From the NCBI GenBank assembly GCA_024704765.1, contig JAKMXF010000088.1, positions 496,001 to 560,000 of the forward strand: a DNA stretch of 64,000 bases, written 5' to 3'. The translations under genes and the position numbers were made by a program. Shown here in pieces: positions 49,001 through 52,000 of the stretch. Source of the DNA: Oopsacas minuta (taxonomy: Eukaryota > Animalia > Porifera). Positions within the stretch are counted from its first letter, which is position 1. Every line of letters begins with the position of its first letter. Under the pieces are notes generated by a model. That model worked only from the letters and a program-made list of their open reading frames with translations, did not search any database and had not been told where the DNA came from.

Positions 49001-52000
49001 AAAATTCTAATGTGACTACCCCGTTAATAAGCCCTGGAAGTAGCATCGCGTCTAGTATTGATTTTCACGAGATAGCTCATTTATATAGAATTATGCAGCC
49101 GAATATTGATATGCAGATCATGACAACAGGCCAGTTAAAATGGAATGTGTTCAAGAGATTAGTATTGTTTTTGTTGTTGTTGATGTTTCTTGTTATTATG
49201 TCTGTGTGTAGGACTTTACATGATTTTTCAGTGGTAAATAATAATACAAATATTTGTTGTAAACAGGTAAACAATACAGTATGATTTCTGTTTGAAATTA
49301 TTAAAATATAATGCTTTGAAATTGAAAATGTTTAGTAGTAGATTATACGGTGGAACCTTACATACCAAATGTCCAAGTGTGTTGATAAGGTAGAGCAGTG
49401 TTAGGGATCAATAAAGTAGGAGTATTTCTTAATAATTGTAACAGTGTTTTGGCAAAATTGTCTCTTATATATGTTTATTAGTGAATTAACCATGGATGGC
49501 GGATTTACTGTATTTATGTTACATACAAATGCCCCGTGTCCAACAAAGTGAAATTGAAAAGTGTCTCAAAATGACCTAGAATAACATCCAAGCAGATGAG
49601 TTAAATACACCACCCTGTGTATTAAATAATAATAACTGACTGATTAGGATCACTAGCTCCACTTCCAGATTTCACCAGTGTCAACACTATAACATCAATA
49701 GCAGTGTATTTAGTCTTACAAGCTAATACAAATCTTGCGTCATAATCATCAGATGTATTAGCAGTGTATACTCGTATAAGTCCTCCTCCCTTAGACATTA
49801 CTGTAGCGAGAGTTGATTCTGTTATCTTATAGTCACTGGCTTTCTTGCCTAATATATCTGAAGAAGATGAAGTTCTGTAGAATTTCACCCTCTCACTTGT
49901 GACTATTTTAGGCCCAGTTTGCATCTTTTCTTGTCTAGAAATTATTACTCAGTTTACCATGACAAAAATTAATCTAAGCACGAGCCTGACAAAATCACTT
50001 GCACTGCCATGTAAATATTCATGTTCAAGATAGGATATGTATCAACATTCCATACTCACCTTGCTATCTCTAGGTTTAATGGCAATAAAATACCCATAAC
50101 AGTTTTAAAATCAGGTCTAATAACAGGATCAGATTGCCAGCACTGTAACATAACCTGATAAAGGTCATCACTACATCCATCTGGTTTAGATAGTCTGTAG
50201 CCGCTTAGGACTTTAACCTTAGTTTGTTGGTTGGAGAGATCTCCGTAAGGGACAGCCCCGTTAGTCCAGAACTCATAGAATAGAATACCAAAACTCCTAA
50301 ATCAGATCTACAGTCAACTCCTGTTATATTGAAGCTCAAGGAACTGAGATAATTATTTCGATATGACTAATGAAATATGTTCCTTTGACGGTTTGGGACC
50401 ATTTTTGTACAATTACAGAATTCCTTATAGGCGGGTATTTTGATATTTCCGTGTTACATATATAACAGGAGTTCATTGTATATTACTTTAGCGTATAATT
50501 GATAATTATCATTTAGTACAAATACTATATTGACGGGGCGAAACGTATTTTCCTGGCACCGGGGTTAAATTCCCAGTCAGGCGCATGGAAGGGCCCCTTA
50601 CCATATATCAGCTGGTTTATCCAATAGCAGAGACACCAACACCTCAGGAGCTGTCCATCTGATGGGGAATGGGATAGCCTGTCCATGTACGTCACACTCT
50701 GGAGTACCAGCATATCTGCTGAGGCCAAAATCTGATATTCTTAGATTACCAACATCATCCAGTAATATGTGAGACAGTTAAGGAAAACAGATTTTGTGTA
50801 AAAGGTTATATTTTATTCATTAAGATAAGGGACATAAACATTAGGTGTAGAATATGTGAATAATCATATTCTACACCTTAAGTGATCATTCTACTTTTTC
50901 ACTCAAAAAAGAGATTTCCTTTCATTGCATTTCACTTTCCTACGATACGTATAAACATTGATAAAGAGTATAGTATAGAGAGGATATATTTCTAGCTGCT
51001 AGATCACAGTGTATGATATTATTAAAGTGCAGATAGTCCATACCAGCTGCTACCTGTAGTACTCTATCTATAATTTCTTTATTAGTGAGATGAGTCTGTT
51101 GTAATAGCTCTAGTATATTTCCATGCATTAATTCCTACAAATTATACAGCTATCGTACATACAGGACTTGTATTGAGATGTTTATAGAAGGAAAATACAG
51201 TTAAGACCCAAAGGCATACAGAATTGTTTTGACTGTATTTTTAACTCACCAGTACTATTAACATTGGTTCCATATTGAATGCTATTCCAACAAGTTTTAA
51301 TACATTGCTATGCGTGATTTTACTACAAACAAATATACGAATAATAAACAATAAATACAGTGTAACTTTCCACAAACAGGGTGTCAGGGACGCCGAAAAA
51401 TGCTACCCCCGTGTGTGGAGGTTCATTTGTATGGGGCTAGGAATTCCCTCTATTTATTATTCACTCCGTTTCCAGAAGTTCCCAATTTGTGGAGGTGACA
51501 CTGTACACGGAAAAAAATGAAATACACCCATGGTTCTACTATAAATAATTACCTCATTATTTCAGCTTCCCGTTTGAACTCTTTCTTCTCAGCAGCAGTT
51601 GTATCAGGTCTTATAGTCTTTATAGCAACTAATTTATCATCGAATAATCCTTGATATACTTCACCAAACCTTCCACGGCCCAGCATATCAGAGAATGATA
51701 TCAGTTTATGAGGGAGTTCCCATCCTTCTAGATATCCGCTCTGCTTCCTGTGTTCTAGTAAATTATCTCTCCAGTAGCTCAGCTCATCTAGATAATCGTC
51801 TTGAAATAGAACATAGTGACCGACTTCCTAGAAAGGAATGTATAATTCAAAAAATTAGAATCTCATTCATAGGTTAAGGGAGCAGAGTAAGAATTATAGC
51901 CAACACAGATATCTCAAAATACCCGCTTATATCGAAGCTCTATTAACCGGTCTACTGTATTAACAAGCTATTTCCATAATTTGATTAGAAATGAATTTGA

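Follow-up and report, generated by a model that had tools for sequence, protein, structure and literature searches.

A probable U12-type AT-AC intron at the catalytic loop of a tyrosine kinase gene in the compact genome of the sponge Oopsacas minuta

A cytoplasmic-type tyrosine kinase gene of the glass sponge Oopsacas minuta very probably carries a genuine U12-dependent AT-AC intron. This 219 nt long stretch occupies positions 50987..50769 of the minus strand in the window, i.e. in the whole 64-kb stretch of DNA that was analysed. The upstream exon ends in ...CAC TGT GAT CTA GCA GCT AGA AAT and is followed by ATATCCTCTC, so that the intron starts at 50987. At the other end, TTTTCCTTAACTGTCTCAC closes the intron at 50769 and the coding sequence continues as ATA TTA CTG GAT GAT..., which places the intron in phase 0.

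The 5' splice site ATATCCTC (50980..50987, minus strand) lies directly 3' of the Asn codon. It matches the /ATATCCTT-like donor consensus in 7 of 8 positions, differing at +8, where the consensus T is replaced by C. Near the opposite end, the branch-point box TTCCTTAAC (50777..50785, minus strand) matches TCCTTAAC and is separated from the terminal AC (50769..50770, minus strand) just by TGTCTC, without a pyrimidine tract. The likely branch A is the second A of the box, 50778, at position -10 from the first exon base (-10 or -11), a distance at the short end of the 10-15 nt range usual for U12-type introns. The original prediction had called an AT-AC intron at 50769-50987 with a branch box about 10 nt before its AC end. 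On the minus strand, position, boundaries and motifs proved exact at single-base level, including the box (50785-50777), whose second A precedes the exon by 10 nt.

Taken by itself, the donor motif is not enriched, as RTATCCTY was observed 9 times in the window versus 13.4 expected. The TCCTTAAC motif, in turn, has a single occurrence in the whole 64 kb, both strands counted. When the two homology boundaries are held fixed and the box is placed 5-12 nt upstream of the end, the joint probability that ATATCCT, the branch box and the terminal AC fall at both boundaries by chance is ~1e-9. The genome contains the intron sequence once, which shows that it is not a repeated element. Its interior holds a perfect 14-bp inverted repeat (50843..50878) composed of AGGTGTAGAATATG and CATATTCTACACCT around an 8-nt loop, and the whole 219-nt intron folds with z = -3.9 against shuffled sequences. 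An Rfam scan of the 64-kb window detected no RNA genes. Another U12-like arrangement was noted on the plus strand of the window at 935-2377, where ATATCCTT is followed 1.4 kb downstream by CTTCCTTGAC-N3-AC. The box is weaker, and this candidate was judged a chance match because the span encloses a 243-aa ORF (1191-1922).

The boundaries are fixed by homology of the flanking exons, which were compared to the profile and to solved structures one by one and not as a joined protein. The PK_Tyr_Ser-Thr profile extends over three consecutive exons, with matches to positions 85-132, 133-188 and 189-256. The first of them (50988..51134, minus strand) contributes 49 codons, ends with ...HCDLAARN in phase 0 and covers 85-132, and the second (50602..50768, minus strand), which reads ...PIRWTAPE...ADI(W) and closes with a split Trp codon before GTAAGG, covers 133-188. 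Across the AT-AC join the profile therefore steps from 132 to 133, with zero positions lost or gained. In ORFs that read into the intron, the Pfam match ends one codon past the Asn and resumes exactly at the Ile, the first codon after AC. The overrun by one codon is explained by the first codon of the intron, ATA, which encodes the same Ile as the first codon of the exon. In the comparison with a solved EGFR chain, the upstream exon ends on residue 147, and residue 154 pairs with the seventh residue of the downstream exon. The first residue of that exon accordingly corresponds to 148, and the flanks of the junction are adjacent (147|148). After AT-AC splicing, 12 residues separate the Asn from DFG, the spacing general among tyrosine kinases. 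The intron had been described as splitting the catalytic loop; its location at the loop was borne out, although it does not fall in the middle: it follows the Asn that closes HxDLAARN and is in phase 0.

Introns in the neighbourhood are of the ordinary GT-AG type. Three were delimited on the minus strand: a 305-nt intron GTAAGG...AG at 50297..50601, a 115-nt intron GTGAGT...AG at 51135..51249 (acceptor AG at 51136-51135), and a third at 51323..51552. None of the kinase exons is interrupted by a stop, and the catalytic motifs are retained. The best solved relatives of the host kinase are SYK, BTK, LCK, MET and EGFR.

Sequences related to this locus were retrieved in a word search using the 64-aa ORF that runs from the exon into the intron. 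The search disclosed six related ORF calls, 85-90% identical, on ENA/Logan genomic contigs that range in length from 5 kb to 1.3 Mb. The comparison was made at the protein level, on the 5' side. In five of the six related assemblies, ...AARN is followed by ISS, then by L, V or Y, after which the sequences diverge and reach early stops. As I-S-S corresponds to ATA TCC TCN, the donor ATATCCTC, including its +8 C, appears to be conserved in the relatives while the body of the intron is not. The remaining ORF (P0154, on a 5.3 kb contig) reads ...HCDLAARKE* in place of ...AARNISS; it may stem from an assembly error or represent another allele or a paralogue. For the 81-aa exon, a full HMMER search returned generic tyrosine kinases together with one 82%-identical ORF fragment (P0010) that stops short of the junction, and a word search with the same exon gave no candidate and no transcript-derived protein. 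Scans of metagenome contigs and genome contigs did not find related loci.

We considered whether the stretch is often or always left unremoved, either because the locus is a pseudogene with an insertion or because its product is a kinase cut short at the in-frame TAG 50942. The palindrome described above is of a kind found in some mobile elements, the short-exon word searches found no transcript-derived protein, and minor introns are known to be retained at higher rates; these points favour non-removal. It is opposed by the kinase exons, which are all open with their catalytic motifs, and by the exon being 85-90% identical in the six related assemblies, with the same boundary. In addition, the insert is single-copy and the set of motifs it carries is far beyond chance. 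We regard non-removal as improbable, and a genuine AT-AC intron remains the preferred reading.

Splicing by the major spliceosome was addressed by enumerating all GT-AG, GC-AG and AT-AC pairs that keep the open frame, with the ends joined to test for stop codons. All GT/GC-AG pairs that preserve the ORF have their acceptors within the downstream exon (50740, 50732, 50719 and 50716), and each deletes at least 29 nt of it. The earlier statement that no GT-AG pair leaves the segment across the junction intact is in agreement with this result. Only one pair, GT 50943 / AG 50740, is free of stops and retains HCDLAARN as well as DFG; with it, 44 nt of the intron would be added and 29 nt of the exon removed. 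This pair preserves an open frame, and a predictor restricted to GT-AG introns would probably pick it. On the other hand, it exchanges the segment at the junction for unrelated residues, and Asn and DFG come to lie five residues further apart. It is further opposed by the Pfam homology, which stops at AT and resumes at AC, and by its poor signals, a GTAGGA donor and a purine-rich acceptor. Relatives also diverge straight after ISS and reach stops, so that the codons it would add are not conserved. We consider this pair very improbable as the junction in use. The existence of such a stop-free model makes it plausible, however, that GT-AG-only predictors mis-annotate the kinase gene. The exact AT-AC junction permits correct annotation of a multidomain tyrosine kinase, and it is needed because the catalytic core would come out divided or distorted in the models of those predictors.

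The assembly used here comprises 61,460,524 bases in 365 contigs, with about 36% GC. The Oopsacas minuta genome paper reports ~61 Mb, 365 scaffolds, 36% G+C and 1.59 introns per gene, and does not mention U12 or the spliceosome (PMC10280926). The description of the genome as compact and intron-poor agrees with this intron density. Searches with Rfam models revealed genes for U12 (68.4 bits, cut-off 53), U11 (103.1 bits, cut-off 39) and U6atac (66.2 bits, cut-off 33), each full-length and present once. One full-length copy of U4atac was found as well, with a score of 52.9 bits that lies 0.1 bit under the gathering score of 53 (E = 9e-7). The branch-site box of U12 is intact, as the gene keeps AGUAAGGAAAA, and its segment GUAAGGAA is complementary to the branch box TTCCTTA(A)C with one A bulged. 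The 5' start of U11 is CAAAAGGGCU. In six-frame searches of the genome, which are insensitive for split genes, PDCD7 (PF16021) gave no match; the same applies to the Ubiquitin_4 domain of SNRNP25 (PF18036), and neither result is read as absence.

The four minor snRNAs U11, U12, U4atac and U6atac, proposed as a test of the original prediction, are thus all encoded in the genome, U4atac 0.1 bit below its cut-off. Together with a second AT-AC intron in the TFIIS gene, these four genes support the working U11/U12 system it had postulated. Although AT-AC introns of U2 type do exist (PMC11347168), removal of the kinase intron by the major (U2-type) spliceosome is the least credible of the alternatives, since neither the ATATCCT donor nor the TCCTTAAC box near the 3' end occurs in such introns, whereas both are present here, and since matching minor snRNAs are found in the genome. 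Points that weigh against the U12-dependent reading are the U4atac score just under its cut-off, the two protein families not detected, a mismatch of the +8 C with U11, and the deviating ORF P0154.

The TFIIS gene was found by a PF07500 search, and its AT-AC intron was checked by eye on the sequence. The intron spans 1022 nt (L007 483..1504; G000:C33:169557-170578) in phase 1, and is bounded by the donor ATATCCTCA and by the branch box TTCCTAAAC, followed by 5 nt and AC. The join reads ...LATEIEE-N-IYNEFKDTG, and TFIIS_M homology in the downstream exon sets in at profile position 41. It shares with the kinase intron the donor ATATCCTC and a branch box near AC, as well as the same genome and snRNAs. 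The two differ in that the TFIIS intron is 1022 nt long, is in phase 1 and contains a nested antisense ORF. This 127-aa ORF (L007 899-1279) includes a CHHC-like CPVNPQH...H...C motif and has no Pfam match. The TFIIS donor has A at +9 and is fully complementary to the sponge U6atac, a feature in which it differs from the kinase intron.

Alignment of the sponge U6atac (L004 1501-1600; G000:C309:397786-397885) with the Rfam consensus shows GUGUUGUAUGUGAGGAGAGA versus GUGUUGUaUGAAAGGAGAGA. Within the box that pairs with the donor, positions 11-12 are changed from AA to UG (UGAGGAG versus AAAGGAG). In the scheme of U6atac-donor pairing, position 12 stands opposite donor +8, and G12 would therefore pair with the +8 C of the kinase intron. 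The +8 C is present in both AT-AC introns read here, those of the kinase and TFIIS genes. It mismatches U11, in which no matching change is found. On these grounds we tentatively propose, at somewhat less than even expectation, that the minor-spliceosome donor code has shifted in glass sponges. The shift would combine the AA to UG change at U6atac positions 11-12 with AT-AC donors of the form ATATCCTC instead of ATATCCTT, and two instances of such snRNA-splice-site co-evolution would then be at hand: the kinase intron, kept in five related genomes, and that of TFIIS. With the conservation in relatives, the kinase intron adds one data point for a possible lineage-specific co-variation of donor and U6atac.

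We infer that minor snRNPs would act on the kinase intron in vivo as in the established U12 pathway, by analogy to which the following steps are suggested. A first step would be joint binding of the U11/U12 di-snRNP to the rigid donor ATATCCTC and to the branch box TTCCTTAAC; the U12 box GUAAGGAA would pair with the latter and bulge the branch A at -10. The U4atac/U6atac.U5 particle would join next, and U6atac would displace U11 at the donor, where the sponge-specific G12 could pair with the +8 C. Excision of the intron would take place at AC, just 8 nt past the branch box. In the product, the Asn of HCDLAARN would be joined directly to Ile-Leu-Leu, and the catalytic loop and DFG would again be spaced by the canonical 12 residues.

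The position of the intron brings to mind minor introns of the RAF family. In the coding sequence of RAF1, which we take to be ...AAC A|AT ATA TTT, and in that of BRAF, presumably ...AAT A|AT ATA TTT, the intron splits the catalytic-loop Asn codon after base 1, in phase 1. The end of the sponge kinase exon is AAT| (phase 0), and the ends ATA| in BRAF and ACA| in RAF1 fit phase 1 in the Asn codon under this presumed codon mapping. The U12 intron of the RAF family thus appears to lie 2 nt upstream and in a different phase, at a close but not identical position, with its mapping in RAF partly presumed. RAF1 and BRAF are listed as minor-intron genes of the GT-AG subtype, with the junctions ACA|GTATCCTTT and ATA|GTATCCTTC, respectively (Olthof 2019, PMC6717393). 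Like the sponge gene, they have a kinase domain in which a minor intron lies at the Asn of the catalytic loop. They differ from it in the subtype, as the sponge intron is AT-AC, and in the host, as the sponge kinase is of TK type and not RAF. As a weaker addition to the tentative shift in donor code, the kinase intron may be an old catalytic-loop U12 intron related to that of the RAF family by a 2-nt slide. No RAF gene was located in the genome when searched via the RBD family. The single RBD match (L016 1686-4754; G000:C222:238185-241253) is one 1022-aa RGS12/14-like ORF with an RGS-like region and a Raf-like RBD.

Within the genome, the nearest paralogue of the kinase (L010, HRDLAARNILVAEGNICK|gt) is without an intron after ARN, and three other paralogues are contained in long open frames. 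Within the limits of this search of the genome, the intron is specific to the lineage of the kinase gene. A search for the phosducin family in the same genome led to a gene whose intron is of the ordinary GT-AG type. In the human and mouse minor-intron lists, BTK, SYK, PTK2 and TNK2 are absent (PMC6717393). The sponge tyrosine kinase that hosts the intron is likewise not represented in the human and mouse lists searched.

Records of minor introns and their snRNAs exist for non-bilaterians (PMC2655684), and intron catalogues cover sponges (Girardini/Olthof et al. 2024, PMC11347168). In the text and supplement of Larue & Roy 2023 that were consulted, no sponge entries occur. The kinase intron resembles catalogued animal AT-AC U12 introns (PMC6717393, PMC11347168) in its ATATCCT donor, in TTCCTTAAC placed about 10 nt from the 3' end, in the lack of a pyrimidine tract and in the AC end. 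Other common traits are its status as a lone minor intron among GT-AG introns and the presence of the four minor snRNAs. It departs from the catalogued type in the +8 C in place of T, alongside an altered U6atac. The kinase intron is genuine but unremarkable as a representative of a known intron type, and apart from the possible co-variation noted above it represents expected biology, because minor introns are ancestral in animals and already catalogued in sponges. Its interest lies in suggesting that a sponge whose genome is very compact and poor in introns retains the complete set of minor-splicing RNAs and uses it.

Several additional features were observed in the host gene, which occupies 40044-51827 of the window on the minus strand. 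In its kinase domain, HRD is replaced by HCD. Downstream of the kinase, PH-like and WW matches are found together with long low-complexity exons, in an order unusual for a tyrosine kinase. An intronless 376-aa actin ORF (44855-45985 of the window, plus strand) is located antisense within an intron of the kinase gene.
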